DNA of 64,000 nucleotides from Octopus sinensis (taxonomy: Eukaryota): NCBI RefSeq assembly GCF_006345805.1, contig NC_043018.1, positions 13,640,001-13,704,000 of the forward strand, given 5' to 3'. This document shows, piece after piece, positions 13,197-62,382 of this stretch. The translations under genes and the position numbers were made by a program. The notes beneath the pieces were generated by a model, which saw only the letters and a program-made list of their open reading frames with translations, was not told the DNA's origin and searched no databases. Every line of letters starts with the position of its first letter. The first letter of the stretch is position 1.

Positions 13197-13263
13197 ATGA
13201 AAAGAACTCTTGCACTCCTCTGCATTGGCGTACTCGTTTCAAGCACCACGTCGCAGAAGCAAG
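13197..13263 (+). CDS. Knottin gene K2, coding exon 1 (signal peptide MKRTLALLCIGVLVSSTTSQKQ)
   Basis: TTTGATTAG|TTGCGCG-ATG...CAA G|GTAAAT; 67 nt, phase 1. Confidence 0.9.
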
Positions 13264-13549: not shown

Positions 13550-13852
13550 GTGGAGGCGCGTGGCTTAGTGGTTAAGGCGCCAGCATCATGATCGTAAGAT
13601 TGTGGTTTCGATTCCTGGACCGGGCGACGCTCATGGGCCCGGTTTCCCGGTTTCAATGGCGTATGTGTTCCCCAGCTGGATGGGACGCCAGTCCATCGCA
13701 GCGTTACTCATTTTTGCCAGCAGAGAGGACTGGAGCAACGTGAAATGAAGTGTTTTGCTCAAGAACACAACGCGTCGCCCGGTCCAGGAATCGAAACCAC
13801 AATCTTACGATCATGATGCTGACACCCTAACCACTGAGTCACGCACCTCCAC
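13550..13852. mobile_element. Fold-back SINE family C in K2 intron 1
   Basis: 81-bp head (+) at 13550-13630 joined to a full inverted copy whose head is at 13772-13852. Confidence 0.85.
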
Positions 13853-14335
13853 TCACGTGATGTTGATAGCCACAAATTGGCAAAACATCGATATCCATCA
13901 TTCCTAAATCCTTCATAATCTCCAGATTTATCTCCAAAAGATTATCGCATATATCACCACATTGATCTTTTCACCTCTGACCTTGCAATCAAAGAAGAGG
14001 AGGGACCATATTTAAACGATTTATGTATTCAAAGTACAACATGGCTTTCAGAAACGGAATTTATACTCTCTCAAAGTGATAGAAAAAGATGTTGAACCTG
14101 ATGGAGTCCAATTTGACTAATGAATAATGATTATAAATCATTTTCGCTTTTTCCGTTCCAAGTGGCCATTTCGTGTAGAACAACCAAATATAATACATAT
14201 TATACGTATATTTCTCTGGTTATTTAAATATCCGCTGATAGCAGTTGAGCCATTTGTATATTTCTATACACCAGAAAATCTATCCGAAATCCTTGGATGT
14301 TTATTTACCTTTCAGTCTTCTTATATCATATCCAG

Positions 14336-14390
14336 ATCGCAGTATGTCCGAGGCTAGGCCAGAAACAGACCATGACCGCTTGGATGGAGG
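14336..14390 (+). CDS. K2 coding exon 2 (acidic propeptide DRSMSEARPETDHDRLDGG)
   Basis: TATCCAG|ATCG...GAGG|GTAAGA; 55 nt, phase 1 to 2, open frame. Confidence 0.85.
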
Positions 14391-15499
14391 GTAAGAAGTA
14401 TACATTGACAATTGTTTGAGAATGGCGTCAGTAAAAGTGAAAGAATTGTTACAATTCTTTTGTTAAACTGATTCATTTGTGTTAGGCTTATTTTGTAAAG
14501 AGTGTCTCGTGCTTTGCGTAACAAAAATATAATCAGAAAATAGAGTAACTGTCTAGGGGGAAAAATGTTTTGTCTAAATGTTAAACAAAGGTATTTTCTA
14601 CAGAGAATATATCTAAAAGTTATTTTTTATCAAATAAATACGCGATTAAAATGTAGAAGTAGTCTGTCTGACAAACGGATTTTGAAAGGAGGCCACAAGG
14701 CTGTAAAAACCCAACCACAGATAAACAAAACATTATTAGCTGACACAAGTTATATAGAAATGGGAATCAACCAAGGATGTCTCTTTCTTCCTATCATGCT
14801 TTTGCCTACGTCTTCCTGTTAAGTGCAACCAAAAAACTGCTCTTAGATTGGTTACTATTGTGAGTACAACCAAAATTAGTCATTTGCACTCTTCACATCA
14901 CATTGAGTTTTGTTCCAAATTCGTGATCCAGTTTCAGTACCATTATCGCGTTTGGGCTCTACAAATATCCTAGAATAAATTTAGATAATCATAGGAAGTC
15001 TACTTTGGTTAATTTTGAAATTGAAATCAGCCATTGAAAGAAATAAAAACAGATTTTGTGGTGGAAATCAGGAGATGAGCAAAAGTGAACAGTTTCAGAA
15101 TATTAAAATGAGAATACTCTTTTCTACTCTAGGCACAAGGCTAGAAATTTAATTTTTGGGGAGGGGCCAGTCGATTAGATCGACCCCAGAGCGCAACTGG
15201 TACTTAATTTATCGATCCCGAAAGGATGAAAGGCAAAGTCGACCTTGGCGGAATAACTCAGAACGTAGCGGCAGACGAAATACCGCTAAGCATTTCGTCC
15301 GGCGTGCCAACAATTCTGCCCACCATGTCTGCACATATGGTTGTGATGCATGAGCCTGGTGTACCCTTATCAGTTGGGTAGTCATGATGGGTATACCGGG
15401 CTTCGTTTATTTTACCCCAGTGTCACTTTGATGGCATGCACTGCTCTCTCGCTCAATAAAAATTATAATAATTACTGAAATCTGTAATCTTGACGGGAA

Positions 15500-16389: not shown

Positions 16390-17706
16390 CAGTTGGGAAT
16401 ACTTGGGAATACTTGAGGCAGATGGAATCAAAGACAATGACATGAAGGAAAAGACGAAAAGAGAGTAGCTGAGGTGAGCGAGAGAAATACTGGCTTCCGA
16501 GTTGAATGCCAGAAACACAATTTCGGCAATAAACTCGCGCGTAGTCGCAGTAGTTCGGTATGGGACTCGAATCTTGAAGTGGACGAGGAGGAGGAGGTAA
16601 AGGCGATAGACAGGGTGTCAAGAAAGCTCCTAACGATGCGTGGAGCCCATCATCCACATGCAGACACTGATCGCCTATACATGAAGAGAGAAAATGGAGA
16701 AAGGGGACTGATCAGTGTGGAAGACTGCGTGCTTATCGAACACGAGAGCTTAATGAGATACATAGCCCAAAGTAAGGAAACCTTGTTAGTGACAGTTAGG
16801 AACGAGGGAGTATTGGGAGCAGCGAAAAAGGGAAAACAAAAGAAGAAGTACAAAAAGGACACGAAGGAAGAATTACACAAGAAAGAACTACACAATCAAT
16901 TCCATGTAGCCACAACAGAAGTTGCTGGAAAACATAGGTGGGATTGGCTGTTGAAAGAAACTCTAAAAAAAAAAACCGGGAGCACTAAACTGGCAGCGCA
17001 GGACCAAGCTCTGGCCACGAACTGGAAGGTCAACCTGAGGAATGAGCAACTGTCTCCGCTGTGCCGCATCTGCAATAGAGTGGATGAAATCATTGTGTAT
17101 ATCGTGAACAAATGCCCTAGACTTGTTCAAAACCACTACAAGTTGTGGTGACATGACCAGGTAGCGAATGTGCTACACTGGAAACTGTGCGAAATTTGGG
17201 GGCTAGGGGGCAACAAGACGTGGTACGAGAACGAACCGAAGAGAGTGGCGGAGTCGGAGACTTGCAAAATCCTCTGAGGTTTCCTAATCCCAAACAGATC
17301 AGCTGCTAGAGCATAACAGACCGGACCTAGTGGTGGTGGACGAGGTGCACCGCATATGCTATATTACTGACGTTGCATGCTCCTTTGACCCACGAATCGT
17401 GAAGAAGGAAGGCGAAAAAATAAATACAACCCTCTTAAGCTATGGAAAATAATGAAGGTGAAGACAGTGCCGATTAGTGCTGGGTCCTTGGGGTCAGTAT
17501 TAGAAGGCATCAAGAGCAATATAAAGGAAATTGGAATAGAGTGCCCAGTAGAATTGTTACAAAAGGTTGCCTCCTTGGCACGGCCAGAATAATCAGGAAA
17601 GAATTAGCTGAAAAGAGCGAATAGCATAGTGCCATAGGCTGCAGGTAGTAAGCCCGTTACGCATACAAGACTCCAAGAACTCCAACAAAACCTGTGATGA
17701 AGGGAA

Positions 17707-17707
<1 letters not shown>
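16390..17707 (+). mobile_element. 5'-truncated R4/Dong-like element (post-RT, CCHC, endonuclease) ending in (AAT)n
   Basis: YLGILEADG, DRLYMKRENGERGL, AAQDQAL, CRIC..CP..H, RPDLVVVD motifs; stops present. Confidence 0.85.
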
Positions 17708-17783
<76 letters not shown>

Positions 17784-17865
17784 TAATAATAATAATAATA
17801 ATAATAAAATAATAATAATAATAATAATGATAATAATAATAATAATAATAATGATAATAATAATG

Positions 17866-17899
<34 letters not shown>

Positions 17900-17947
17900 A
17901 AATAATAATAATAAATGATGATAATGATAATAATAATAATAATAATG

Positions 17948-17982
<35 letters not shown>

Positions 17983-18218
17983 CAATTCTTTTTTATTGGC
18001 CACAAGGGCTGACACGCATGATTACATAAAGGGACAAGACAGGACGAAAGTTTACAACAGGGTTTTGTCCGTTTGTTAAAAAATCCGTGTAAAAAACTTT
18101 ATAACAATGATTATTAAAACAATGAAAAACTCCCAAAAGGGGGAGACGTTTCGAAAGGTTCCTGGTGGAAAAAACCCTACAAAAGCCAACGGGAGCCTGG
18201 TCTAATAATAATAATAAT

Positions 18219-18250
<32 letters not shown>

Positions 18251-18342
18251 AAATAATAATAATAATAATGATAATAATAATAATAATAATAATAATGATA
18301 ATAATAATAATAATAATAATAATGATAATAATAATAATAATG

Positions 18343-18392
<50 letters not shown>
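17708..18392. repeat. (AAT)n tracts (17708-17983, 18205-18392)
   Basis: Directly visible. Confidence 0.95.
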
Positions 18393-18393
<1 letters not shown>

Positions 18394-18590
18394 TGGGAGC
18401 TAGAGAGAGGCAAAACGTGGTATGAGCACAAACCGCAGAGTGTTGGGGAGTCAGAGACTTGCAAAATCCTCTGGGATTTCCCAATCCAAGCAGATCAGGT
18501 GCTAGGGCATAACAGACCGGACTTCGTGGTGGTTGACAAGGTGCACCACATGTGCCATATAGTTGATGGTTGCATGCCCCTTATGATTTG
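18393..18590 (+). mobile_element. Short R4/Dong-like endonuclease fragment
   Basis: WYEHKPQSVGESETCKILWDFPIQADQVLGHNRPDFVVVD, directly after an (AAT)n tract. Confidence 0.8.
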
Positions 18591-18812
18591 CATTCGTCTT
18601 TTGACAGTCCCGCTTCTGTTGCGACAGAAGCAGGATTGGGAACACTACAATGTTAACACAATCAAAGAAGAATCAAAGTAACTATAGAATCATCTCATCG
18701 GAACGATAGCAATTTAGAGGCTTCGGATATAAAATATGTTTCTATAGTACAGTTGCAACATACCTGGTGTCTTTAGATTGCTAAAATTTCTAATTATTTT
18801 CTCTGTTTACAG

Positions 18813-19032
18813 AAGAAGCAGATATAGGAGAGCCAACATATGCCAAAGATTGACGTGTAATAATCCAGGTGAATTATGCTGTCATGGTCAAAAGTGTTTA
18901 TGTACAGGCCTCTGGTCCTACTGCCACTGCAAATATTCGAGCTGCGCAATAGTTGCGATACATAATTATATATGTATAGGTATTTGTTTGTTAGCTTTTC
19001 TTCTACATGTAGTATGGACCTGTCCGATCTAA
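18813..19032 (+). CDS. K2 coding exon 3: RSRYRR cleavage site, knottin ANICQRLTCNNPGELCCHGQKCLCTGLWSYCHC, hydrophobic tail
   Basis: TTTTCTCTGTTTACAG acceptor, phase 2. Spacing C-4-C-6-CC-4-C-1-C-6-C-1-C; tail KYSSCAIVAIHNYICIGICLLAFLLHVVWTCPI*. Spliced ORF is 113 aa. Confidence 0.92.
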
Positions 19033-19059
19033 GTGCCGCGTTTATTATTAAACATCGTA

Positions 19060-19278
19060 AAGGCGGCGAGCTGGGAGAATCGTTAGCACGCCGGACGAAA
19101 TGCTTAGCAGTATTTCTTCTGTATTTACATTCTGAATTCAAATTCCGCTGAGGCCGACTTTGCCGTTCCTCCTTTCGGGGTCTATAAATTATATACCAGT
19201 TGCATACTGGGGTCGATCTGATCGACTGGCTCTCTCCCTCAAAATTTCGGGCCTTGTGCCTAGAGTAGAAAAGATTAT
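19060..19278 (+). mobile_element. SINE family A (variant tail) in the K2 3' UTR
   Basis: Starts 28 nt after the K2 stop codon. Confidence 0.85.
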
Positions 19279-19954
19279 TCAACATCATATAAAACTAATA
19301 AAATAAAGTCTGAATTAAAATGTTAAGACAAATTTTTTGCGTTCATTCGTCGTACATATGTTCATATATAAATGTTCTTTGCGTAAATCAGACAATCAGA
19401 CAAGATATATTTGCATATAAAGGATCATTGTGTAATGTATATATGCAAATGCGTTGTAGTATGCCCGAAACAAAGTTTCTTCTTTGAACATTACTCTCGT
19501 TCAATGAACAATATCGTTATGTGAAATTGAGAAAACACTAATTTTACAGGACACACGCAAAGTCTGCTATGAAAAAATGTAAAAAATTATATTTACGCAT
19601 CATGCAGTTAAGAAATTATTGAGATGGAGTTTCGGAACAGAACACCCACATAAGTTTAATTTTCTCCGCTTTGACAGGGATCTTCCGAATTTTATTTTTC
19701 ACTCAGACCTTCGAGGTAATGTGTTGGTGGGGACTTTTTATGAAAAATGTTTTTGAAAAATTAATTTTTTTCTTCACCTCAACCCCATTCTCCCGGCAGA
19801 TATTGGTGAATTTTTTTGGCATTAGGCACTTAAAAACAACGAGAGAAGCCTTTTCGGTAAAAAGAAAATTTCAAACAGAAAACTGTGTGATTGAAGGGCG
19901 ATTTGGCTGCTTCTGGCTCATCCTCTTTTCTTTGTCACTGTCACATACTCTTAA

Positions 19955-20166
19955 GTCTTTTACTTGTTTCAGTCATTTGACTGCGGCCATGCTGGAGCAC
20001 CGCCTTTAGTCGAGCAACTCAACTCCGGGACTTATTCTTTTTGTAAGCCCAGTACTTATTCTATCGGTCTCTTTTGCCGAACCGCTAAGTGACGGGGACA
20101 TAAACACACCAGCATCGCTTGTCAAGCAATGCTAGGGGGACAAACACAGACACACAAACACACACA

Positions 20167-20216
<50 letters not shown>

Positions 20217-20392
20217 TACGACGGGCTTCTTTCAGTTTCCGTCTACCAAATCCACTCACAAGGCTTTGGTCGGCCTGAGGCTATAGTAGAAGACACTCGC
20301 CCAAGGTGCCACGCAGTGGGACTGAACCCGGAACCATGTGGTTGGTAGACAAGCTACTTACCACACAGCCACTCCTGCGCCTATGTATTGAT
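19955..20392 (-). mobile_element. tRNA-derived SINE, family B (about 440 bp, internal CA/TA microsatellite)
   Basis: Head AGGCGCAGGAGTGGCTGTGTGG..GGTTCAGTCCC. Partial copies at about 1310-1500, 4950-5150 and 30895-31080. Confidence 0.85.
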
Positions 20393-21843
20393 ATTTTTCC
20401 ATAGCTGTCTTTCCATAAGTACATTTTATGGAATGACGATACGGAAGTAACGGTACATTGCAGCGATTTAAACAATAGCAAAAAATTTGAAATTTAAATC
20501 CCCCACCCCACCCCACCCTACCAAGCGAGGTCATGTGTGTGTGTGTGTAAGAAGGCACACATGGTCGAGATGTAAAGAGAACCCTTTCCTCTTAAAGCTT
20601 TTTTTCTTACAGAATCCCACGTTTTATGCTATGGGGATTCCGATTATGAAAAACAATTTTCAAAAAATCGCAACTTCAAAATTTCAATCCCCGAACCATT
20701 TGTTCATTTTTCACTTTTTCCGGAAATTTTTTTTCGCAAAATACATAGAAAAATACGGAGATTATTATTCTGAAGAAAAAAAAAAAGTTTGTAAAATTTC
20801 AATTTTCCAAAAAGAAAAAAAAATACTCCAATCCCCTCCTCTCCCGATTCTACGGCCTTGGTCTTCAAGCAAGCTATCCACATGGGAGGATAGGCCATCA
20901 AATAACCAGCAGCTTGGTTATTATTCACCGAACGGTAAACCATTCGCAGAATTTCGTTGACTCTGAAACCGGCGCTTGCACAAACGGTCAACATAAAGAT
21001 CTTCACTCGTGAACAAAAGAAAAATTAACAATGGATATATATTGACTTTTTTTTTTCGGAATCTCACGTTTTTGGTTATGGAGGATCTAATTCTGAAAAA
21101 AAAAAAAAATTAAAAAATCGCATTTTCAAAATTTCAATTACCACCCCCTCCTTCATTTTTCACTTTTTCCAGAATTTTTTTTTCCGTACAAACCACATTG
21201 AGGCCTATTGGTCACGAATCGGAAGACGGTTAAAATATGTCACTGGATCATCGGGCAATATGAAATAGTCCCGCATCGATGAATCGATGTATCGAGAAAT
21301 GTATGGATTTACTACGGTTAAGAAAAATTTCCAGAATTTCTATACATTTCTCAAACACGTTTCCGAAGTATATTCCCGCTAAACTCCGCTGGCGTCCATG
21401 GCGGAGGTTTCCAGTTGGAAAAAACAAAAACGAACGAACACTTTAATTTCATTTTGTCATAGTATTTATTTGCTACTTGAAATTTTGAAGTTGCGGTTAT
21501 TGGATGTGCTAGAAACAACAGCTAAATCTCGTTTAAATCGCACAACTTTTCTTGTGAAAATATAATTCTTTTAAACCGCAAAAGCTTCTCCCATCGTTTT
21601 TAAGTGAGTACTACCAAAAAAAAAAAAAAAAAAAAAGCCAAAATCGGTCTGGATGGGAGCAAGGAGGAGAAAGTAGGGAGTGCTAAAAAAATTAGATCGT
21701 GGTAAAAAAGAAACTAGAAAAATCCCCGTCAAACGGAAAAAATCCGACATGGGATGTTCTGATCCGAAACTATTATTGAAATTATTCACTACTCATTTTG
21801 CCCCAATTAAGATATTTTTGAAAATGTAAAATTATCAAATAAG

Positions 21844-23209: not shown

Positions 23210-23735
23210 TCTGAAAAGATGTGTCTGTTTGCGTGCATGCATCTTGTCAATCTCTCCGTAAATCGATTAATGATCCTATCTTTCGTCAACAATATACCTT
23301 TCTTTACTACCCACAAGGGGCTAAACACAGAGAGGACAAACAATGACAGAAAACAGATCAAGTCGATTATATCGACCCCAGTACGTAACTGCTACTTATT
23401 TAATCGACCCCGAAAGGATGAAAGGCAAAGTCGACCTCGGCGGAATTTGAACTCAGAACGTAGCGGCAGACGAAAGCATTTCGCCCGGCGTGCTAACGAT
23501 TCTGCCAGCTCGCCTATTTCGTCAACAATATAGACAGGTATTCTTCGGAACACGGTTGGCATCTCCTTGACGATGTTGTACGGATTTGCATGTTTAATTA
23601 TTGACCAGGTCAGGTCGCATTTGACCTTCTCTTTGAGTTTCCAGATGAAATCGGCCAGAAATGTCGAATGTTGTTCATTTACCTTTTTGAAGCAGGTGAT
23701 GTGATTTCTGTATCGATTTTTGTTCTTAATTATTC
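23210..23735 (-). mobile_element. Penelope-like (Neptune-type) GIY-YIG fragment split by a SINE
   Basis: RYRNHITCF..STFLADFIWKLKE..WSIIKHANPY, then EEYLSILL..NRFTERLTRCMH beyond the SINE; 16-bp TSD TTTCGTCAACAATATA. Confidence 0.8.
23300..23515 (-). mobile_element. SINE family A with 16-bp TSD
   Basis: TSD at 23281-23296 and 23517-23532. Confidence 0.9.
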
Positions 23736-24256: not shown

Positions 24257-24488
24257 CTACAGGTGAAAAGAAGAAAGTAAAGAAATGCTTATACATATAT
24301 AATTACATATTGTTGTAGATTCTGCGCTAACCTCATAAAAGAAAGATTGCACGCATGCGCACTTCATCCAGTAAACATTACAAACACAAGCATGGCCCTG
24401 GCAGCACGTGCTCTCTGGTGTCTTCTCAATGGGACTACATGACTGATGCCATCTGGCGCATATTACCGCTTGTCTCTTGCTTTTGGCT
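24257..24488 (-). CDS. K3 coding exon 3: AKSKR site, knottin QAVICARWHQSCSPIEKTPESTCCQGHACVCNVYWMKCAC, C-terminal tail
   Basis: TTATTTTCAG acceptor, phase 2. Spacing C-6-C-10-CC-4-C-1-C-6-C-1-C, identical to K1; tail ends CNYICISISLLSSFHL*. Spliced ORF is 118 aa. Confidence 0.92.
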
Positions 24489-25019
24489 CTGAAAATAAAT
24501 AAATAAATATTTCTTGGGAATAGGACGCATCGTAGTCTTTCCAATTATCAGGGTACATACCTGTATAACTGGAGAGATTGAAGAGTTTTAATGCAGGAAT
24601 AGGCTAAGCGTAAATGGAAACGCTTATGGGTATTGGAAGAAAATTCGGAGCATATGCGTAGCTAAGTGGAGGAGATGGAATTGGTAGAGATTTGTCACGT
24701 GTTAATCATGTGGACATGACTAGAAATGATGAAGGTTGTCTTTACAGGTGACTGCTTACAGAACCTGTCGTTGTCATTAGATATGTATTTCAATATATGA
24801 GTGGTGAAGCAAATTATAATTATACTCATAATCAGAATTTTTGTATAAGTTTGCCGATAATGATTGTTTTAACATACCGAACTACTTAGTAAAATCATTA
24901 ATTATTAATTAATTAATTAATTAATTTTACCCTTTTTTATTATTGATAATATAATTCTCTCCCTGATAGTAAACGCGTATACAGTTAATCAGAGTCGGGT
25001 AGATTCATTATTTTTTTCT

Positions 25020-38298: not shown

Positions 38299-38416
38299 GA
38301 TAGCTACAGGATTAGTGTAACCTAAATTTCAGCTGTTGACCTTTGCTTCTTTGTAGGAATAAAGCTTCCGTTTCTAATGACTCCCGTTGTTTTATTTCTC
38401 TATCAGTAGGTGCGTG

Positions 38417-38480
38417 ATGAAAAGCATCAGTGTCCTATTGTTTTGTGTATCCATTTCATACACCTTCTCCGATAAACAAA
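38417..38480 (+). CDS. Knottin gene K4, coding exon 1 (signal peptide MKSISVLLFCVSISYTFSDKQ)
   Basis: TCTCTATCAGTAG|GTGCGTG-ATG...CAA A|GTAAGT; 64 nt, phase 1. Confidence 0.9.
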
Positions 38481-39149
38481 GTAAGTATAATAAGAAATAT
38501 CTTTTATTTTATAGTCATCAGGTATGTAGTGGGAGAAAAGAGGGAGAGAAGAAAAATGAATAACCTTACCCCAGCGGTACTTCGTATGGACCCCATTTAT
38601 ATGTAATTACAACTTTCAAAGAAATAACTCTACACATAGGTCAAATATTCAGAATTACGATTCTTCAACATAATATAAAACATTTCATTAACAATATGAC
38701 TGACGAATCTTTTATATACAAACCAAGAAGAATTCTAGTGGTGTGCTCTGATCTGTTACTTCTATATAAGATCAGAAGGTAAGCACGGCCGAAATGCCGC
38801 TAAGCATATAGTCTGTCGAGCTAAGAATTCCGTCAGTTCGCCACCGCCTTTTGGACTCATAATTATTAAAATCATTAAAGAATAGAATCAGCAGGAGCTG
38901 TATATAATGTCTCGTGTATTTTTTGTTTGTTTGTTTGTTTTCTTCTCTTTCCTTTTTATTGCTCCATTGGTTTTTATCTCCTTTATGCATTAGAAATGTC
39001 CATCACTACAGTGATGGGCCATATTAACAGTCTGAGAGAGGAAATATGAGTTCCAGTCGTAATGATCCTGCATCTTTTGTGTATTTCTACACAAAACTTT
39101 GGTAAATTGATATCTAATTCTTCCGTGTGTATTTCAATGTCTCTTTCAG

Positions 39150-39210
39150 ACATATCTCCCGTCCATCAACAGACAGGAGCTAACGTAAGTTGGAGTGAAA
39201 TGAGTCGTAG
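39150..39210 (+). CDS. K4 coding exon 2 (propeptide NISPVHQQTGANVSWSEMSRS)
   Basis: CTCTTTCAG acceptor, TAG|GTAAGA donor; 61 nt, phase 1 to 2. Orthologous position in the K6 duplicate. Confidence 0.87.
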
Positions 39211-39230
39211 GTAAGAACTACATATCTACA

Positions 39231-39615
39231 TCTCTCTCTATATAAACGGCAGTTTGTCTGTGCGTGTTTCTGTGTGTCTGTTTTCTCGTACCCTCACTCT
39301 GACCACGGCTTTCAACCGATTCTGATGTAACTTGACACACACATAGCCCAATGTCATAATTCAAAACTAACGCAGCGAAAATTTTGAAAAGTTCCCCCAG
39401 TTCTGAAAAAGATCGATAAATTCGACATGGGGTCGAGAATCTGAAACCCAAACCACAGACCGTCTAGGGGACGCAACTCCACCTTTTTTATCCCTCAAAA
39501 AAAATTTACCATAATTTTTTTTCCATTTTTTTGCTATTTTTTGGCTATAACTCTCTAAAAATGCTTTATAGTTATTTCCCTTACAAACCCGAGCAACGCC
39601 GGGCGATACTGCTAG
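39231..39615 (+). mobile_element. Non-autonomous Helitron in K4 intron 2
   Basis: TC start, CCCG..CGGG hairpin and CTAG end, inserted at A^T. Empty site is present in the K6 paralog near 59792. Confidence 0.85.
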
Positions 39616-40823
39616 TATCTTATATATGTAATTAATTTAGTATTGCCCAGGCGGTAAGCTGTCACAATCATTAGCACTCTGGATAAAACACTTTGTGGCA
39701 CTAATTCCGGCTTTAAGTTTGGGGTTGAAATTTCGCCGATGTTGACTGCATCTTCCATTATTTCTGGGCCGCTGAAATAAATGCTAGCTGGGAGCAAGTG
39801 TCCATGTAACAGAGTAGCAGCCTCCATCAACGTTTCAGGCCCTTGTGTCTATGATAGAAAAGTTATTAAATATTGGCAAATTCAAATTCTGAGACGGTTT
39901 CTAAATTATAGTTTCTGCGTAACAGAAAATCTGAAAGGGGAAGATATGAAGCGAGATTTATCGAAAGGAAAATTACTTTCATGAGTAAAAATCAAATAAT
40001 ATTTATTACAAAATTTATTAAAGATTTATTGAGATATGTGTGTAGATATGACTGTGTGGTTAGAAATACATTTAGTAACCACCAAGTTTCAGGTTCAAAT
40101 GCTTGAGCAAGGTTTTTGTTACTATGGCGCCGAGGCGAGCAATAACATCTCAACGAATGTGGTAAACGACCGGTCTTCCATATTTTCACTCATCAACTTC
40201 CATATTGTATTTGTAATGTGCGACCATCCGGTACAAAAATATTTTGTTCATAGTGTTCAAATGTATGCTCTGTGCACTGGGTCATTCTCTCCATCAATTC
40301 GACGTGGCCTGAACAGCTACAATGATAAGTATTGGGGGCTATTTGTTCCACCAAATTCTTGAATATTGGAATAAATCAAGCTTCTAACGATGTTCAAAAT
40401 TCCACTACCATAACCGATAGGAAAACAAACAGATAAAATACGTTGATATAAATCTTTTATATAGTAAATGTGCAGGTGTTGAAGGGATCGCAGAACAGCA
40501 AGAGATAAAATGCTATGCTCAAGAACGCTACGCACGATTTGGCCTAGGAATGGAACTTACGATCTCATTGTTGTGAGTATCTCAGCCTAATTAGTAGGCC
40601 ATGCACATTTACTATAGGAAAGATTTATATCAACGTTTTTTATCTGTTTGTTTTCATGATGGTTATGGTAGTGGAATTTTGAACATCGTTGGAGGTTTGA
40701 TTTATTTCAGCATTCCAGTATATGGCGGAACAAATTGCTCCCAATATTTATTCATTTTAAATGTGGCACGTGAAGAGGTCAACAAAATTTGCAATGCGCA
40801 GTGGAGCAAACACACAGGGTAAT

Positions 40824-43731
40824 GCATACATACATACACACATACATACATACATACATACATACATACATAATACATACATACATACATGCATACATAC
40901 ATACACACATACATACATACATACATACATACATTCATACATACACACATACATACATACATACATACATACATACATACAACATACATACATACATACA
41001 TTCATACATACATACATACATTCATACATACATACATACATACATACATACATACATTCATACATACATACATACATTCATACATACATACATACATTCA
41101 TACATACATACATCATTCATACATACATACATACATACATACAACATACATACATACACATACATACATACATACATCATACATACATACATACATACAT
41201 ACATACATACATACATACATACATAACATACATACACATACATATACATTCATACATACATACATTCATACATACATACATTCATACATACATACATACA
41301 TTCATACATACACACATCATACATACATACATACATACATTCATACATACATACATCATACTACATACATACATACATACATACATACATACATACATAC
41401 ATACATTCATACATACCATACATACATACATACATACATACATACATGCATACATCCATACATACATACATGCATACATCCATACATACATACATACATA
41501 CATCCATACATACATACATACATACATACATACATACATACATACATCATACATACATACATACATACATACATACATACATTCATACATACATACATAC
41601 AATACATACATACATACATACATACATTCATACATACATACATACATACATACATACATACATCATACATACATACATTCATACATACATACATACATAC
41701 ATACATACATACATACATTCATACATACATACATACATACATACATACATACATACATACATTCATACATACATACATACATACATACATTCATACATAC
41801 ATACATTCATACATACATACATACATACATTCATACATACATACATTCATACATACACACATACATACATACATACATACATTCATACATACAAACATAC
41901 ATACATACATACATACATACATACATTCATACATACATACATACATTCATACATACATACATTCATACATACATACATACATACATACATACATTCATAC
42001 ATACATACATTCATACATACATACATACATACATTCATACATACATACATTCATACATACACACATACATACATACATACATACATACATACATACATTC
42101 ATACATACATACATACATACATACATACATACATACATTCATACATACATACATACATACATACATACATTCATACATACATACATACATACATACATAC
42201 ATTCATACATACATACATTCATACATACACACATACATACATACATACATACATACATACATACATTCATACATACATACATTCATACATACATACATAC
42301 ATACATACATACATACATTCATACATACATACATTCATACATACATACATTCATACATACACACATACATACATACATACATACATACATTCATACATAC
42401 ATACATTCATACATACACACATACATACATACATACAAACATACATACATTCATAAATACATTCATACATACACACATACATACATACATACATACATAC
42501 ATACATTCATACATACATTCATACATACATACATACATACATTCATACATACATACATACATACATTCATACATACACACATACATACATACATACATTC
42601 ATACATACATGTATACATACATTCATACATACACACATACATACATACATACATTCATTCATACATACATACATACATACATACATACATTCATACATAC
42701 ACACATACATACATACATACAAACATACATACATTCATACATACATACATACATACACACATACATACATACATACATTCATACATACACACATACATAC
42801 ATACATACATTCATACATACATTCATACATACATACATACATACATTCATACATACATTCATACATACATTCATACATACACACATACATACATACATAC
42901 AATCATACATACATACATTCATACATACATACATACATTCATACATAACATACATACATACATACATTCTACATACATACATACATAACATACATACATA
43001 CATTCATACATACACACACATACATACTACATACATACATACATACACACATACATACATACATACATAATACATACATACATACATACATACATACACA
43101 CATACATAATACATACATTCCATACATACATACATACATACATTCATACATACACACATACATACATACATCATTCATACATACATACATACATACATAC
43201 ATACATTACATACATACATTCATACATACACACATACATAACATACATACATACATAATCATACTACACATACATACATACATACATTCATACATACTTC
43301 ATACATACATACATTCATACATACATACATACACATTCATACATACATACTACATACATACATACATACATACATACATACACATACATACATACATACA
43401 TGCATACATACATACATCATACATACATCCATACATACATACATACAGACATACATACATACATACATTCATACATACTACATACATAATACATACATAC
43501 ATACATGCATACATACATACATAACTACATACATAATACATACATACATACATACAATACATACATACATACATTATACATACATACATACATACATACA
43601 TACATACTACATACATTCATACATACACATACATACATTCATACATACATACATACATACAACATTCATACAATCATACATACATACATACATACATACA
43701 TACATACTACATACATACATACATACATACA

Positions 43732-43762
<31 letters not shown>

Positions 43763-45166
43763 CATACATACATACATACATACATCTACATACATACATC
43801 ATACATACATACATACATACACATACATCATACATCATACATACATTATACATACATACATACATACATTCACATACATACATACATAACATACATCATA
43901 CATACATACATACATACATACATTCATACATACATACATACATACATACATACATACATTCATACATACATACTACATACATACATACATACATACATAC
44001 ATACATACATACATTCATACATACATACATACATACATACATACATACAATACATACATACATACAACATACATACATACATACACAAATCATACATAAC
44101 ATACATACATACATACATCAACATACATACATACATATACATACATCATACATACATACATACATTCATACATACATACAATCATACATACATACATACA
44201 TACATATACATACATACATCATACATACATTCATACATTACATACATACATTACATACATTCATACATACATTCATACATACCACATACATACATACAAT
44301 ACATACATTCATACATAATACATACATACATAATACATTCATACATACATACATCCATACATACATACATACATACATACATTCATACATACATACATTC
44401 ATACATACATACATACATACATACATACAAACATACATACATACATACATCATACATACATACATACATACATACATACATAACATACATTCATACATAC
44501 ATACATACATACATACATACATACATACATACATACATTCATACATACATACATTCATACATACATACATACATACATACATACATACATACATACATAC
44601 ATTCATACATACATACATTCATACATACATACATACATACATACATACATACATACATACATACATACATACATACTACATACATACATACATACATACA
44701 TACATTCATACATACATACATACATACATACATACATTCATACATACATACATGCATACATACATACATACATACATTCATACATACATTCATACATACA
44801 TACATTCATACATACATACATACATACATTCATACATACATACATACATACATACATACATACATACATACATACATACATTCATACATACATACATTCA
44901 TACATACATACATACATACATACATACATACATACATACATTCATACATACATACATACATTCATACATACATACATACATACATTCATACATACATACA
45001 TACATACATACATACATACATACATACATACATACATTCATACATACATACATTCATACATACATACATACATACATACATACATACATTCATACATACA
45101 TACATACATACATACATACATACAACATACATACATACATTCATACATACATACATACATACATAG
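40824..45166. repeat. 4.3-kb (CATA)n microsatellite in K4 intron 2
   Basis: Directly visible; source of the HTYI and MYVC ORFs. Confidence 0.99.
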
Positions 45167-45680
45167 AATGATTCAAGAATATATTGAATTATTCTGATTG
45201 AAAATCTGGAACAAAAAGAAGAATTTTAAACTCAATACCTCGTGGCTAAATACTCTAACGAGGATTAATAAGGTGTCTACATAAATCCAAATGTATGAAA
45301 CACGTCAAAATACAGAAATTTAATTACTTAAATTTACATATTTGCTTTTTATTAATTGAAGATATTTAATGTTCCACGAATGCCTTTAACATTATTGATG
45401 TATAACAACTTCAACAAAAACATTCACCATTAATTACAAATGTTTATATTGTGAAAAACATGAAATAAATTTATCAAATAAATATCATTGAGTTATAATA
45501 ATGTTTCATCAAAAAATTTTGTCGTATATTAATTTGTACTTGCAGCATTCATATTTTGAGTTTAAGTCCCGTGAGAATCTTTAGTTCTATCGACGTCGAT
45601 AAGATAAATACCAGTATAGTCTAATCCTTTTTCCCGCAAATTCCTTGCCTTCTCCCTTAATGAGAAACCATAATTTAATA

Positions 45681-46140: not shown

Positions 46141-46369
46141 TGACAAGATCAAGAGAGCAGCTACATGTTCAATAGGGTCTTGTGGAGAAGCTGCCTTCAA
46201 GAGATGCTGCGGCCATAGCAGATGTATATGTTTTGTGGTGCCCGGGGGCACTCGTTGCATGTGTATGCTCCATGCGGGGGCGGCGGCTGGTAACGCTGTA
46301 CTGCAAACTGTAAGCGCTTTTCTCGTTTTTCTTGTGAATTTCCATTTTATTGGCGTTCTGCTCCTGTGA
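46141..46369 (+). CDS. K4 coding exon 3: KIKR site, knottin AATCSIGSCGEAAFKRCCGHSRCICFVVPGGTRCMC, GPI-like tail
   Basis: TGTATTTTCAG acceptor, phase 2. Spacing C-4-C-7-CC-4-C-1-C-8-C-1-C; tail MLHAGAAAGNAVLQTVSAFLVFLVNFHFIGVLLL*. Spliced ORF is 117 aa. Confidence 0.92.
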
Positions 46370-48134: not shown

Positions 48135-48978
48135 TATATATAACAGATGTGAGGAGCGAAATCCTTGAAAGGGATGTCAAACACCCAACCCTGCAGCTAC
48201 AGTCCAAGTAAAGAATATGTATATATATAAATATATATCCAATATTTTCAAAGACAGGGGAGGAAGTTTAAGGAAAGGACAAAATTTGTTCGCCTCTGGG
48301 CTACAAAAGGTCTTTGTATATTTTTGTTGGTTGTAATAATTCATAGCAATATGTAATTCTTGATGATGAATCTCATTTGTATTTCATGAAGAGTTTTTCG
48401 TTCTTGTCTTTGGAATTAATTAAACACTGAAACAACTTATAGAAGGTATATTGGTTCTGTACCAACTTGGGTTTGAATTGAATTGAAGTTCGTCGACACT
48501 TACAATTTTTTCCTTCATTTACTTTTATATATATATATATATAGGTGCAAAATTTAAGTTAGTTGAAATACGCTTGTTCTTTAATGATTTTAATAATTAT
48601 GAGTCCAAAAGGCGGTGGCGAACTGACGGAATTCTTAGCTCGACAGACAATATGCTTAGCAGCATTTCGGCCGTGCTTACCTTCTGATCTTATATAGAAG
48701 TAACAGATCGGAGCACACCACTAGAATTCTTCTTGGTTTGTATATAAAAGATTCGTCAGTCATATTGTTAATGAAATGTTTTATATTATGTTGAAGAATC
48801 GTAATTCTGAATATTTGACCTATGTGTAGAGTTATTTCTTTGAAAGTTGTAATTACATATAAATGGGGTACATACGAAGTACCGCTGGGGTAAGGTTATT
48901 CATTTTTCTTCTCTCCCTCTTTTCTCCCACTACATACCTGATGACTATAAAATAAAAGATATTTCTTATTATACTTAC

Positions 48979-49042
48979 TTTGTTTATCGGAGAAGGTGTA
49001 TGAAATGGATACACAAAACAATAGGACACTGATGCTTTTCAT
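48979..49042 (-). pseudogene. K5: orphan inverted copy of the K4/K6 signal-peptide exon
   Basis: 64 nt identical to K4 and K6 exon 1 with intact splice sites. Intron homology stops at about 48578 and no exon 2 is found downstream. Confidence 0.8.
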
Positions 49043-49639
49043 CACGCACCTACTGATAGAGAAATAAAACAACGGGAGTCATTAGAAACGGAATCTGCAG
49101 CTGAAATTTAGGTAACACTTATTTTTTTCGCTATCCAAACTTATTTCACTGAAAATCCGAGCTTCACGACATTATCGTTTAAACAATAAGTAGCTAATTT
49201 AATTGCACCAAAAGTACTAATGCAAATTTAATTCCACCAAAAGAACTAATGTAAATATATAACTGAGGTGAAGATGATGTCTTCGAAGCATTTGTCCGTA
49301 AATGTTCTCTATACTGTTGACTGTGAATGAAATGTTCTTACTTCAAAAGTATCTGGCTTCTATAGCTATATTGGTTTTACTTCTGTCCGAAACAAGGATT
49401 TGAGGCTTGTCAAATACTTACACACATACACACACCATCATCTAAAAATGATGTATAAAAACCTGTTGTTTTTACTGCTATGTCAAAGATAGACCAAAAC
49501 TAGAATGCATTCACACGTTTCAAATCAAAGAATACTGGTGCAACAACTCAATAAAAACAGCAACCCGATGATAGCAAAATTGTTGCATGGATTTGAGGGC
49601 TGCAGTCGTGCTCTGTTGCAAAGTTTGATGGATGTGAAT

Positions 49640-53069: not shown

Positions 53070-54983
53070 AGGGTGGTTAATATAGGGATGACCTTCTACT
53101 AATTACTAAAAATTGCACTAATAGGAACCTAATAAAAAACTTTATAGTTTCTTTAAAAGATATGATTTAAGTATTATTATATATAATGAGAATTTTAATG
53201 TTAATTATTTAGATGTCAATTTTAATCTAATTACAGGTAAAACACAACCATATCATAAACTTAATGAGAACCTCAGATATATAAATGTTAATAGTAATCA
53301 CCCACCATCAATTAAAAACTCGTTGATTAATAATATAAGTAAACGTATATCATTACTTTCTTATGATTTAGAGATTTTTAATAAACATGCTCCTTATTAC
53401 AATGAGGCCCATAGAGAGGCAGGTTATAATAGTAATATTAAATTTTTATTAAAAATAAAGATATAACTATTAATATTAGAGATAAAAATATTAATAATAA
53501 TTATAATAATTTTGTTAGTAATAGTGGTAATAATCTTAGAAATTATAAAAATAAAAATAATATAAATAAAAATAAGAATAAAAATGGAAATATAATTAAT
53601 AACTTTAATAATACTTTAAATATTAATTATAAATATAAATCTAATAATAATAATAATTATATGATAAAGAAATATAATAATAATAATGGTAACAATAATA
53701 ATGACAGTTTTAATAATAAGAACAAGGAAAATAAGAATAAAATTTGGTTAATAGTTCCTTATGGTGCTCAAGTTAAAACGAACATTATTAAAGAGATTTT
53801 AGATATTATTGAACTATTTATTCGAGATAATCGTAAATATAAAAACATTTTCTCTAGTAATAATTTTGGAGTAGGTTCTTCCACCACTAATAGTGTAGGT
53901 AACATTATTTCTTCTTTTAACAAATTTAAACTGAATAATTTTGATAAACATAAATTATATAATAATACCAATAATATAGATAAGACACTAATTAACTGTA
54001 CATGTAGAGATAAAACTAAATGTAAATTAAATAATAAATGCGATATTAACGATGTAGTGTATAAATGTATAGTTACATTACATGATGAGAATAATAAGAA
54101 TAATAATAACTCAAACGCGATATATATAGGGTCCACTTCCTCTAAAATAAAATTAAGAATTGCACAGCATATGCATTCATTTAAAAATAAAAACTTAATT
54201 AACTCCACTGGACTTAGCAAGTACATTTGGGGACTTAAATTCCAAAATATTAATTATAATTTATCTTGGGAAATAATTAGTAAGGCTAAATCATATAGTA
54301 TAGGAGCGAATTTTTGTTATTTATGTTCAAATGAGTTTAAGGAAATTTTATTTTATAAGCATGATAATTTAGTGAAAACCTGTGATGAGCGCAAAATAAA
54401 ATGCAGACACAAGTTGCTTTACTTATATAATAAATTTCTTGATAAATAATGAATATTTCTTAGCCTTAATTATCTCCCTATTTGTTGTTTTATGTAATAG
54501 TATTCTAAATATAGCAGGTGATTTGTAGTATTTATTATATTAGTTTCTTTTAGTTATTTAGGTTCAGTTTTTAATTATAGTTAGATTATATATAGTTGTT
54601 CATTTTATTACTAAATATTTTATTACTAAATATATTTTTAATGAATATTTAATGATTTATTGAATATAGAGTCTGATATTTCAATTAACCTGAAGATTGA
54701 CTGTAACCATAACTCGAATTATTACGAATAGTACAGCTAAGAAATGATCGTAGTGTTTTACTCTTTATTTTTTATTAAACTTTTAATACTTATGATATAT
54801 ATTTAAAATAATATAAATTAATTAATTTTATGTATTAGCTTATGTTTTTCATTGTTTGATTTGCCTAATAGTGGTTTTATCTCTAATTTAATATAATATA
54901 AAATAATATATTTATACTATAAAATTGGATTTAATCCTAAATCTGATTTTTCCCTGTAAGTTTGGATTTATTCCCTAATATTT

Positions 54984-56934: not shown

Positions 56935-58165
56935 CATAGCAAGTTGAGACTGAGATAAGAAGAAGAAAGTTGGAGCAAACAGACTATATATATAAATACC
57001 ATCATCTAATTTGAACTTTACCGTTAGAATATAACAAGTATGTAACATTCAAATTATTCATTGTGGCTGTTTGTAAATTAGTAATAACAATGTACAGAGT
57101 GTTATGGTAATGATGATGTCTTATAGAGGTAGAATGTGTGTTTGTAAGCTTCGTTTTTTTGTTGCCTGTATTCATGTGTACAACCGAAGAACCTGAAAAA
57201 GAGAAAGTATCCTTCAAGATTTTCGCCTCACAGTTCAGCGCTTGCACTTGGTGAATATGCATGGTTTTAATCTTTACTTTTGGGATAAACTGTAGCTTTT
57301 CTAGTTTTGTTTTTTTTTTTGGCTAATTCAAATCGGTTGTTAAGAAACAAATGAGAATATTAGTGTTGGCTACTACAGCTTTATATTTGTCATAAGTTCT
57401 CGAAAAATGTTCTCATTTACTCACTTTATCGAGAGGCAACAATTAAAAATGATTCTAAAACATTATATCGGCCAAAATTATAAATATTCGTTAATACTTA
57501 AAACTATTGTTGCAATTAGTCACATTACTAATTGTTGAAATGATCATTAAATGTCTTTGACGATATGTCAGCTGGAGTAGGAATAACTTGTTCCTAAACA
57601 ACAATTTGGAATATGCAGCGATTTTCTAGTATCAATATACATGTTCGCATAAGGCGGCGAACGAGTAGATACGTTAGCAACGCCGGGCGAAATGCTTTGC
57701 AGTATTTCGTATGCCATTACGTTTTGATTTCAAATTCTGCCGAGGTCGACTTTGCCTTTCATCCTATCGGGGTCGATAAAATTATGTACCAGTTACTCAC
57801 TGGAGTCGATGTAATCGACTTAATCCGTTTGTCTGTCCTTGTTTGTCCTCTCTATGTTTAGCACCTTTTGGGTAATAAAGAAATAGAGATTTCGTCTATA
57901 TTTACGATCCAAGTTCAAATTCCGATAAATTAAGTACCAGTTTCGTACTGGGGTCAATCTAATCGACTGGCCCTTCCTCCAAAATTTCGGACCTTGTGCC
58001 TAGAGTAGAAAAACAAAAGAATATATATTTTTGCATCTGAAAACCAACATATAGACATTGTCGTGTTTTCATCGAAAAGTTTGACGTCTCCACTGAAGAA
58101 CATGGACATTATGGAGGATATAGATTTGATACTGCTTAAAATCACCTTTTTTTTTTATCTAATTG
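56935..58165 (+). promoter_or_regulatory. Conserved upstream block of K6
   Basis: Diverged paralog of 34150-35340; includes TATATAAATA near 56988 and a conserved GTATGT motif. Confidence 0.5.
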
Positions 58166-58549: not shown

Positions 58550-58621
<72 letters not shown>

Positions 58622-58996
58622 GTATTTGACAAGCCTCAAATACTTATTTCGGACAGAAGTAAAACCAATATAGCTATAGAAGCAAGATACATTTGAAGTA
58701 AGAACATTTCATTCACAGTCAACCGTATGGAGAATATTTACGGACAAATGCTTCGAAGACATCATCTTCACCTCAGTTATATATTTACATTAGTACTTTT
58801 GGTGGAATTTAATTTGCATTAGTACTATTGGTGCAATTAAATTAGCTACTTATGGTTTCAACGATAATGTCGTGAAGCTCGGATTTTCAGTGAAATAAGT
58901 TTGGATAGCGAAAAAAATAAGTGTTACCTAAATTTCAGCTGCAGATTCCGTTTCTAATGACTCCCGTTGTTTTATTTCTCTATCAGTAGGTGCGTG

Positions 58997-59060
58997 ATGA
59001 AAAGCATCAGTGTCCTATTGTTTTGTGTATCCATTTCATACACCTTCTCCGATAAACAAA
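58997..59060 (+). CDS. Knottin gene K6, coding exon 1 (signal peptide MKSISVLLFCVSISYTFSDKQ)
   Basis: Identical to K4 exon 1; A|GTAAGT donor. Confidence 0.9.
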
Positions 59061-59711
59061 GTAAGTATAATAAGAAATATCTTTTATTTTATAGTCATCA
59101 GGTATGTAGTGGGAGAAAAGGGGGAGAGAAGAAAAATGAATAACCTTACCCCAGCGGTACTTCGTATGGACCCCATTTATATGTAATTACAACTTTCAAA
59201 GAAATTACTCTACACATAGGTCAAATATTCAGAATTACGATTCTTCAACATAATATAAAACATTTCATTAACAATATGACTGACGAATCTTTTATATACA
59301 AACCAAGAAGAATTCTAGTGGTGTGCTCTGATCTGTTACTTCTATACAAGATCAGAAGGTAAGCACGGCCGAAATGCCGCTAAGCATATAGTCTGTCGAG
59401 CTAAGAATTCCGTCAGTTCGCCACCGCCTTTTAAAATCATTAAAGAATAGAATCAGCAGGAGCTGTATATAATGTCTCGTGCTTTTTTTGTTTCTTTTCT
59501 TTTCTTCTCTTTCCTTTTAATTGCTCCATTGGTTTTTATCTCCTTTATGCATTAGAAATGTCCATCACTACAGTGATGGGCCATATTAACAGTCTGAGAG
59601 AGGAAATATGAGTTCCAGTCGTAATGCTCCTGCATCTTTTGTGTATTTCTTCACAAAACTTTGGTAAATTGATATCTAATTCTTCCGCGTGTATTTCAAT
59701 GTCTCTTTCAG

Positions 59712-59772
59712 ACGTCTCTCCCGTCCATCAACCGAAAGGAGCTAATGTAATTTTGAGTGAAATGGGTCGTAG
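59712..59772 (+). CDS. K6 coding exon 2 (propeptide NVSPVHQPKGANVILSEMGRS)
   Basis: CTCTTTCAG acceptor, TAG|GTAAGA donor; 61 nt, 8 substitutions versus K4 exon 2. Confidence 0.88.
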
Positions 59773-60276
59773 GTAAGAACTACATATCTACATCTCTTAT
59801 ATATGTAATTAATTTAGTATTGCCCAGGTGGTAAGCTGGCACAATCATTAGCACTCTGGATAAAACACTTTGTGGCACTAATTCCGGCTTTAGGTTTTGG
59901 GTTGAAATTTCGCCGATGTTGACTGCATCTTCCATTATTTCTGGGTCGCTGAAATAAATGCTAGCTGGGAGCAAGTGTCCGTGTAACAGAGTAGCAGCCT
60001 CCATCAACGTTTCAGGGCCTTGTGTCTATGATAGAAAAGTTATATGTGTATGTATGTATGTGTGTGTGTTTGTGTGTGCGTACGTGGGTGTGTACGGATG
60101 AATGGATGAACGAAAGAAATGAAACTCTTTTTCTAATAACTGATGCCTATTTTCTACACTACACTCGGGCCGACCCAAGCCTTTTAAGTGAACTTGGAAA
60201 ACGGAAACTGAAAATAAGTCCGTTATATACATACATACATACATACATATATACATACATACATACATATATATAT

Positions 60277-60307
<31 letters not shown>

Positions 60308-60635
60308 AAACGAAACGATCAACGAAACCCTTTTCAAGCTTAGCCAGCTCATGGACCCGGGTTCCCGGTTTCTCGGTTATGAGTTTCCTCTCCTCAGCTG
60401 GACAGGACGCTAGCCCATCCAAGCGAGAGAGAGAGAGAGAGAGTGAGAGAAAGAGTACAACAGGGGTCGCCACCACCCCCTGCCTGAAATTCGTGGAGCC
60501 TTTATGTGTTTCCGCTCAATAAACACACACAACGCCTGGTCTGGGAATCGAAACCGCGATCCTCCGACCGCGAGTCCGCTGCCCTAACTAGTAGGCCATT
60601 GCGCCTCCACGCACACACACATACACACACATCTG

Positions 60636-61149: not shown

Positions 61150-61872
<723 letters not shown>

Positions 61873-62162: not shown

Positions 62163-62382
62163 CAACCCTCACGCGGGAAATGGAACGTGCAATCCAGTGT
62201 TCTGTCTCTTAAGCTCAACAACACCACACTTACCTTGCTGCTCAGGTTCGAATATTTGTACATGCAGACCTTATCGTTTCTGCAAATGTAATTCTCAGAA
62301 TATGATCCATGTGGCTAATAACGGTATACTCCAAACTGTGATAATTTTTCTGATTTTTTTTGTAAATTTACCATCTTATTAA
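62163..62382 (+). CDS. K6 coding exon 3: knottin NPHAGNGTCNPVFCLLSSTTPHLPCCSGSNICTCRPYRFCKC, GPI-like tail
   Basis: TGTATTTACAG acceptor, phase 2. Spacing C-4-C-10-CC-5-C-1-C-5-C-1-C; tail NSQNMIHVANNGILQTVIIFLIFFVNLPSY*. Spliced ORF is 114 aa. Confidence 0.92.

Follow-up and report, generated by a model that had tools for sequence, protein, structure and literature searches.

Can the tail that follows the cystine knot in a small octopus gene hold the encoded peptide at the membrane? The question is raised by an exon of Octopus sinensis, K2 exon 3, which lies within a 64,000-nt stretch of contig NC_043018.1 (positions 13,640,001 to 13,704,000; hereafter the window). A first-pass annotation had described this exon as a knottin with a furin site and a tail resembling a glycosylphosphatidylinositol (GPI) attachment signal, and reading the sequence confirmed both its coordinates and the order of its parts (RSRYRR, eight Cys, the small residues SSCA, a spacer, and a hydrophobic end). 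From gene structure and comparison with relatives, K2 is well supported as the terminal exon of an intact three-exon gene predicted to encode a small secreted cystine-knot peptide, within a tandem cluster of the octopus lineage. We further propose, with somewhat less than even confidence, that the tail encoded by this terminal exon is selected as a loosely constrained membrane-holding segment, for which a GPI signal would be the best fit. The exon is composed as follows:

18813-19032 (+): K2 exon 3, the last coding exon, stop codon included; splice acceptor and frame read from the sequence
18814-18831 (+): convertase-type site RSRYRR (R-X-K/R-R), which closes the K2 propeptide; sequence motif
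18841-18930 (+): eight-Cys knot domain of K2, C-C-CC-CxC-CxC; assigned by Cys order
18931-19029 (+): 33-residue C-terminal tail of K2; K and the small residues Y-S-S-C-A lead into a spacer, and the last 20 residues form an uncharged hydrophobic end

The acceptor of exon 3 consists of a polypyrimidine tract and an AG that ends at 18812, and the first exon base (18813) is the third base of a split codon. Translation from 18814 runs through the basic motif, the eight Cys, and the tail to a TAA stop at 19030-19032. A six-frame scan of the window identified four further exons with the same Cys framework and acceptor phase, giving five paralogues (K1-K5), and the combination also recurs in nine exons of three octopus loci. 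At the protein level, K2 exon 3 is 64-69% identical to exon 3 of Octopus bimaculoides LOC128250537. The furin site proposed for K2 is present as R-Y-R-R and is kept as R-Y-K-R (RSRYKR) in this orthologue, while K3 and K4 carry KR at the same position; the R-X-K/R-R motif supports K2 as a predicted proprotein-convertase substrate at the junction of propeptide and mature peptide. The last 20 residues of K2 have a mean hydropathy of 2.34, a value matched by only 0.5% of 1,894 background open reading frame (ORF) ends from the window.

A profile search against 1.84 billion representative proteins returned two proteins, P0001 (RefSeq XP_052831628, O. bimaculoides) and P0002 (XP_052831765, isoform X2 of O. 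bimaculoides LOC128250537, in which four different residues replace the signal peptide). A cluster look-up added P0003 (XP_052831763), which is isoform X1 of LOC128250537 and a cluster mate of P0002. LOC128250537, with its two RefSeq isoform models, is the K2 orthologue and its locus is syntenic with the window, while LOC128250510 (O. bimaculoides) and LOC118767484 (O. sinensis) are K3-like paralogues. These three genes are true relatives, built from three exons like K2 and likewise carrying a tail past the knot, but in the distal tail they diverge through frameshifts and in where the stop lies. Every annotated relative bears the name "uncharacterized protein", with no Pfam domain recorded. 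A word-based protein search with the K2 exon and an exact look-up of the TTG-started K2 ORF gave no match, and a protein search with P0003 found its own isoform only. The searched literature contained no paper on the LOC loci and no description of octopus knottins or of any family of cystine-knot peptides from cephalopods. As far as the searched databases show, the K2 family appears to be unannotated and lineage-restricted.

At the genomic level, the nine additional exons come from three loci, L001 to L003, which together with the five window exons make up the 14 members compared here. L001 (O. bimaculoides CM046622.1, 36.41 Mb) is collinear with the window over ~3-30 kb at ~78-91% nucleotide identity, and holds K1-like, K2, and K3 genes in the order and orientation of the window. 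Non-coding DNA of the window is ~10-15% diverged from O. bimaculoides. L002 (O. bimaculoides, 29.15 Mb) and L003 (O. sinensis) carry K2-like and K3-like paralogues.

The two upstream exons of K2 are:

13197-13263 (+): K2 exon 1, with the start codon, a 22-codon signal peptide, and one base of a split codon; phase-1 donor CAAG|gtaaat
14336-14390 (+): K2 exon 2, a 55-nt acidic propeptide exon; acceptor tccag|AT, donor GGAGG|gtaaga

Exon 1 aligns with the signal exons of K1, K3, and K4, and is 79-86% identical to residues 1-24 of P0003. Its signal-peptide features (a basic start, a hydrophobic core, and an end of small residues) are conserved in the O. bimaculoides model. Exon 2 matches residues 23-40 of P0003 at 78% identity (tblastn), and the orthologous exon could also be read. 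A conserved intron start occurs in the window only at the exon-2 donors of K2 (14390-14415) and K3 (25474-25499). A short middle segment likewise separates the signal peptide from the knot exon in P0001 and P0003, and the resulting three-part build, seen in these two O. bimaculoides proteins, is repeated in P0004 (O. sinensis) behind a longer predicted N-terminus. K2 is intact throughout, with a start codon, three exons, four good splice sites, eight Cys, a convertase site, and a stop. The predicted precursor has 113 residues and comprises a signal peptide, an acidic propeptide ending in R-Y-R-R, the knot, and the tail.

A two-exon model, in which the signal exon is joined straight to the knot exon, needs a weak AA|GT donor that is missing in K2; this model was dropped because the O. 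bimaculoides models show the 55-nt middle exon and the use of a strong phase-1 donor of the AAG|GTAAGT type. Every first exon in the cluster (ending at 6833, 13263, 27797, 38480, and 59060) closes with a tandem donor resembling AAG|GTAA|GT, whose two GTs lie 4 nt apart. The upstream GT is strong, in phase 1, and fits the three-exon models; the downstream GT would join in frame to the knot exon, skipping the propeptide, in K1, K3, K4, and K5, and is absent in K2. Candidate splice donors within the tails (ATAG|GTATTT in K2, GAG|GTTAGC in K3, and ACT|GTAAGC in K4) were rejected, being neither common to the paralogues nor used by the RefSeq models. Since the RefSeq models include the tail and no donor within it is shared, the tail is indicated to be part of the predicted primary translation product.

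The remaining paralogues of the window are:

3203-6902 (-): K1, exons 6902-6833, 5231-5177, and 3332-3203; stop one codon past the last Cys, no tail
24257-27866 (-): K3, exons 27866-27797, 25553-25499, and 24488-24257; tail of 31 aa
38417-46369 (+): K4, exons 38417-38480, 39150-39210, and 46141-46369; tail of 34 aa with an Ala/Gly-rich run of small residues
58997-62382 (+): K5, exons 58997-59060, 59712-59772, and 62163-62382; tail of 30 aa

Signal-peptide exons lie 3-8 kb 5' of each knot exon. The middle exon has good splice sites in K2 and K3, and a splice-phase scan gave one unique candidate each in K1, K4, and K5; all five genes are alike in exon phases and splice sites.

The claim that K2 encodes a knottin-type peptide holds at the level of the Cys framework. 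The eight-Cys pattern was found by pattern scan in all 14 members, and in a 12-member alignment seven Cys columns are invariant while the eighth is kept in >90%. Matches to proteins of known structure are all weak: lambda-MeuTx is the best for the K2 knot alone (E 0.018), followed by the spider inhibitor cystine knot (ICK) toxins omega-agatoxin IVA and Aa4a (PDB 1iva, 2ndb; E 0.3-0.9). The two spider toxins were the only PDB matches of the family profile and were among the three matches of K2 alone. Significant sequence similarity to a known knottin family was thus not found, with PDB matches at E 0.018-0.9 and no Pfam domain. AlphaFold models of the knot have a predicted local distance difference test (pLDDT) of ~55-64, too low for a firm fold assignment, and Foldseek returned nine PDB matches that were all knottins, lambda-MeuTx included, but at E 3.5-10, none of them significant. 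Given the weakness of these matches, we regard K2 as knottin-type by framework and not as a demonstrated member of the agatoxin family. The pooled ratio of nonsynonymous to synonymous changes (pN/pS) of the knot is 0.45, a value of purifying selection, which together with the retained Cys argues that the knot genes are functional and not dead.

By framework, omega-agatoxin IVA and Aa4a are the closest known systems, having the same Cys order as K2 (C-C-CC-CxC-CxC). Homology to them is not established, and K2 differs in its octopus source and its three exons. The likeness of K2 to the scorpion ICK peptide lambda-MeuTx (lambda-MeuKTx-1, PDB 8f2f) is limited to the Cys scaffold; unlike K2, this peptide of 38 residues is without a hydrophobic extension. 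The two spider chains extend ~11 residues past the last aligned Cys (the alignment ends at position 37-38 of 48-49), whereas the K2 tail is about three times longer, uncharged, and reaches the C-terminus of the predicted primary product. In the spider toxins, too, the segment past the last Cys is hydrophobic. Modular spider toxins such as CsTx-1 combine an ICK domain with a C-terminal membrane-seeking helix that is cationic and amphipathic, in a soluble secreted toxin. K2 resembles this arrangement in having a knot followed by a C-terminal segment that is predicted to be helical, but its tail is uncharged and transmembrane-like.

A tail of this kind is a common trait of the family. Past the last Cys, the 14 members have 1, 4, 12, 30, 31, 31, 33, 33, 34, 35, 35, 39, 47, and 50 aa, such that 11 of the 14 carry a tail of 30-50 aa and the three short ones are all of K1 type. 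The tail DNA of K2 is homologous to that of K3, to the K2-like tails, and to the DNA past the K1 stop, where the TAA of K1 aligns with TAT in K2 and CAA in K3. We also considered the tail as a dispersed repeat and rejected this, since its only matches are to members of the family. BLAST finds no similarity between the K2 tail and those of K4 and K5, although the latter equal it in length and hydrophobicity; the K4 tail has a run of Ala, Gly, and Asn followed by 17 hydrophobic residues. In the AlphaFold model of the K2 exon, residues 43-69 are helical at pLDDT 83-88. Such a long uncharged tail is unusual on a knottin precursor.

In the immediate surroundings of exon 3, mobile elements occupy both flanks, namely a long interspersed nuclear element (LINE) fragment and a short interspersed nuclear element (SINE) copy:

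16474-18680 (+): degenerate LINE fragment in K2 intron 2, from the C-terminal region of a reverse transcriptase and interrupted by microsatellites; ORFs at 16474-17151 and 18268-18681 with ORF2-like motifs
19060-19272 (+): SINE copy between the K2 stop and the poly(A) signal; 80-86% identical copies elsewhere in the window
19297-19307 (+): a pair of overlapping AATAAA hexamers that probably serve K2 as poly(A) signal; homologous to the AATAAA ~45 nt past the stop in SINE-free K2-like paralogues

We take the ORFs at 16474-17151 and 18268-18681 to be LINE ORF2-like. The LINE fragment stops ~130 nt 5' of exon 3. A signal-like ORF at 18574-18677, just 5' of the exon, was rejected as an alternative first exon: it lies inside this fragment and is without a counterpart in the paralogues. 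The O. bimaculoides orthologue has the SINE at the same place, and the coding sequence annotated for LOC128250537 terminates within it; the paralogues in L002 and L003 lack the insertion.

The layout of the K2 tail was compared with that of a GPI-attachment signal using a crude home-made rule, not a validated predictor, which asks for an uncharged hydrophobic stretch of ~12-20 residues at the C-terminus with small residues at omega and omega+2, 6-12 positions upstream. By this rule K2 passes, and 7 of the 14 members do, compared to 2.8% of background ORF ends and 7.9% of T-rich ones. The layout is kept in the O. bimaculoides K2-like gene. By the rule it is lost in the K2-like gene of O. sinensis, where an Arg interrupts the hydrophobic stretch, and in the O. 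bimaculoides K2 orthologue. The GPI-signal layout put forward for K2 in the first-pass annotation fits K2, its K2-like paralogue, K4, and K5; the O. bimaculoides K2 orthologue has charged residues in its tail and an end read from the SINE. The accompanying suggestion of a natural tethered toxin is a live hypothesis, in which the role as a toxin is itself putative.

We hypothesize that the tail is translated and that, in the K2, K3, K4, and K5 lineages, selection may keep it open as a loosely constrained hydrophobic segment holding the knot at the membrane. The best-fitting mechanism would be a GPI-attachment signal, consistent with the small residues after the knot, the short spacer, the hydrophobic end, and the lack of a basic flank. 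Cleavage in the endoplasmic reticulum (ER) and lipid anchoring would then tether the knot to the outer leaflet, in reach of an adjacent membrane protein that it could influence. Stops just past the knot delete the tail in the K1 lineage and would give freely secreted forms. Taken on its own, GPI anchoring is possible but less likely than not. The broader idea, that lineage-specific octopus cystine-knot peptides are naturally GPI-anchored and act in cis, with free K1-type forms arising repeatedly by loss of the anchor signal, we put forward only tentatively.

In terms of the proposed principle, the closest systems are Lynx1-type prototoxins and engineered GPI-tethered toxins, with the reservation that anchoring of K2 is putative. 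Lynx1 and related Ly6/uPAR prototoxins place a small, disulfide-rich, toxin-like domain at the cell surface by means of a lipid anchor, where it acts on a neighbouring channel or receptor. The Ly6/uPAR fold is three-fingered, in contrast to the knottin Cys order of K2, and no Ly6 chain was among the PDB sequence or Foldseek matches, such that K2 is not placed in the Ly6/uPAR family and resembles it in proposed mechanism only. Tethered toxins are treated in the literature (for example PMC7056315). The searched literature contained no report of a natural lipid-anchored knottin.

Whether the tail is maintained by selection can be approached through its reading frame. All indel lengths in the proximal tail are divisible by three (12 and 3 nt between K2 and K3, 3 nt between K2 orthologues, and 12 and 9 nt between K4 and K5), and indels of 1 or 2 bases are confined to the last ~10 tail codons. 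For nonsense mutations, a neighbour-joining tree was built from the first 99 nt of 12 tails, in which the tree length over the nine long-tailed members (K1c, K2, and K3) is 1.32 substitutions per site; the nonsense rate, taken from the codons of long tails, is 2.2-4.0 per substitution per site. This predicts 2.9-5.3 nonsense mutations for the first 28 codons of the nine long tails, and none was seen (P 0.005-0.055), whereas on the branches to truncated K1 members 1.5-2.7 are expected and 2-3 were seen. The lower pN/pS of the hydrophobic core (0.54) than of the linker (1.27) points the same way. We judge that the balance tips slightly toward the tail being kept for a purpose in the K2-K5 lineages.

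The alternative that survives best, which we consider possible if rather improbable, is neutral read-through, whereby the tail is a former 3' untranslated region (UTR) that is open by chance, is hydrophobic from T-rich DNA, and has no anchoring role. In a variant of this explanation, the stop of the family once lay just past the knot or was never fixed, and the product is trimmed, poorly made, or tolerated. Several observations weigh against a selected membrane-holding tail, and most of them are what neutral read-through would predict. The nonsense test is rough because it rests on a 99-nt alignment and a neighbour-joining tree. Amino-acid constraint on the tail is weak: pN/pS is near neutral at 0.81 for pooled tails and 0.78 for K4 against K5, and the contrast between the hydrophobic core (0.54) and the linker (1.27), with 28 changes in each, is not significant. 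Moreover, tail identity is no higher than that of introns and flanks. K3 orthologues are ~94% identical in tail and 3' flank alike and ~90% identical in the knot, introns of K2 and the K2-like paralogues are ~85% identical, a level close to that of their tails, and the conserved block continues through the stop to the AATAAA ~45 nt downstream. An extra constraint on the tail at the DNA level had been suspected from the 90.8% identity between K2 and its L002 paralogue, and is unsupported because introns of the same paralogues are ~85% identical. Fast knots, slow flanks, and a conserved 3' UTR are usual in toxin-like gene families.

The composition and the ends of the tails also weigh against a selected tail or on the side of neutral read-through. 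T-rich DNA translates into hydrophobic residues in two of three frames, and the other frames of the tail DNA are hydrophobic too. K3 tails are weakly hydrophobic, and two K3-like members have polar or charged ends. Frameshifts set the distal ends of members apart: the O. bimaculoides K2 orthologue changes frame distally through indels of 2 nt and 1 nt, which bring Asp, Arg, and Lys into its tail, and the final ~10 residues are read from the SINE. Furthermore, the K1 stop is a single base away from the aligned codons of K2 and K3, and three K1 members function without a tail. Against neutral read-through, the nine long-tailed members have neither nonsense mutations nor proximal frameshifts where ~3-5 are expected, and the long tails cluster at 30-35 aa, compared to background open segments in the window, which are 10 codons long in the median and 17.6 on average. 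The tails of K4 and K5 are independently open and hydrophobic. Finally, a useless 30-residue hydrophobic end bearing a Cys should harm a secreted peptide, yet the knots are under purifying selection.

A second alternative, which we judge unlikely, is that the tail is a cleaved C-terminal propeptide, serving in ER retention until folding, in granule sorting, or in self-protection, with a protease rather than the GPI transamidase freeing a soluble knottin. The evidence for maintenance of the tail applies equally to a propeptide, and the tail-less K1 forms are examples of a stand-alone knot. All four K2-type genes have a basic residue right after the last Cys, and the O. sinensis K2-like gene has R-G-R at this place, which would suit cleavage and amidation. 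However, K3, K4, and K5 share no conserved dibasic or other cleavage motif between knot and tail. Nor are C-terminal propeptides that are hydrophobic and uncharged known to us from knottin precursors of animals, which also counts against this function. A plain membrane anchor is a further alternative to the GPI signal for the K2 tail. That K2 is here a decaying or unexpressed copy, its long frame without a biological product, is very unlikely: no K2 protein model was found in the searched databases, exon 3 lies between two mobile-element remnants (the LINE fragment and the SINE), and the cluster contains an orphan signal exon, but the three exons, four splice sites, start codon, eight Cys, and convertase site are all intact, the O. 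bimaculoides orthologue has two RefSeq isoform models, and the SINE is common to that expressed-looking orthologue.

If, as we propose, the tail tethers the knot to the membrane, the family would represent a second, independent invention of the Lynx1 "prototoxin" principle, on a different fold. Anchored and tail-less members would then lie in one cluster, showing a secreted peptide arising from a membrane-bound one, and anchor loss in K1 would be a counterpart to the way in which secreted three-finger toxins evolved from Ly6 ancestors that were anchored. Even if the tail is neutral, the cluster is an unannotated, fast-evolving octopus gene family, and its tails are a warning that anchor signals can be mimicked by T-rich 3' ends.

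In L001, three K1-type knot exons with tails of 4, 12, and 33 aa lie ~1 kb apart at 2433-4496 (-), downstream of a single K1 signal exon at 7915-7847; they may be alternative terminal exons or a tandem exon duplication. The one K1 knot exon of the window is orthologous to the long-tailed L001 copy, yet has its stop one codon past the knot.

K4 and K5 may also have been affected by duplication. In their 5' parts (38363-39866 and 58943-60043), from the signal exon through exon 2 into the beginning of intron 2, these genes are 95-97% identical, whereas their knot exons and 3' flanks are only ~77% identical, which suggests a recent duplication or gene conversion confined to the 5' half. An inverted partial duplicate at 48585-49435 (-) is 96.7% identical to 58604-59455 and contains an orphan first exon at 49042-48975, the third identical copy of the K4/K5 signal exon, with no propeptide or knot exon downstream on the same strand. 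Intron 2 of K4 contains a microsatellite of ~4.5 kb (40700-45200) of tetranucleotide type, with ATAC/ATGT-like units and strong GC skew.

Overall, the window has ~36% G+C and is rich in microsatellites and in mobile-element sequence, both SINE copies and LINE fragments. When 18000-21000 was scanned with Rfam, microsatellites and nothing else were matched. The SINE family found downstream of K2 is present in many copies in the window, including near 23299-23514, 29986-30224, 57651-57886, and 61392-61621, and a reverse-transcriptase-like ORF fragment of a LINE also occurs at 9162-9806 (-). A repeat of ~225 bp, found at 13629-13853 and 6128-6353 with 93.8% identity, lies a few hundred bases 3' of the K2 and K1 signal exons, and related copies are present in the K5 intron (60288-60610); it is probably a miniature inverted-repeat transposable element (MITE) or a SINE and not a conserved intron. 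Long (AAT)n tracts cover ~1830-2870 and 17600-18460, and a very AT-rich stretch at 53661-54449 (+) contains a 262-aa Asn-rich ORF, which may be the remnant of a mobile-element protein.
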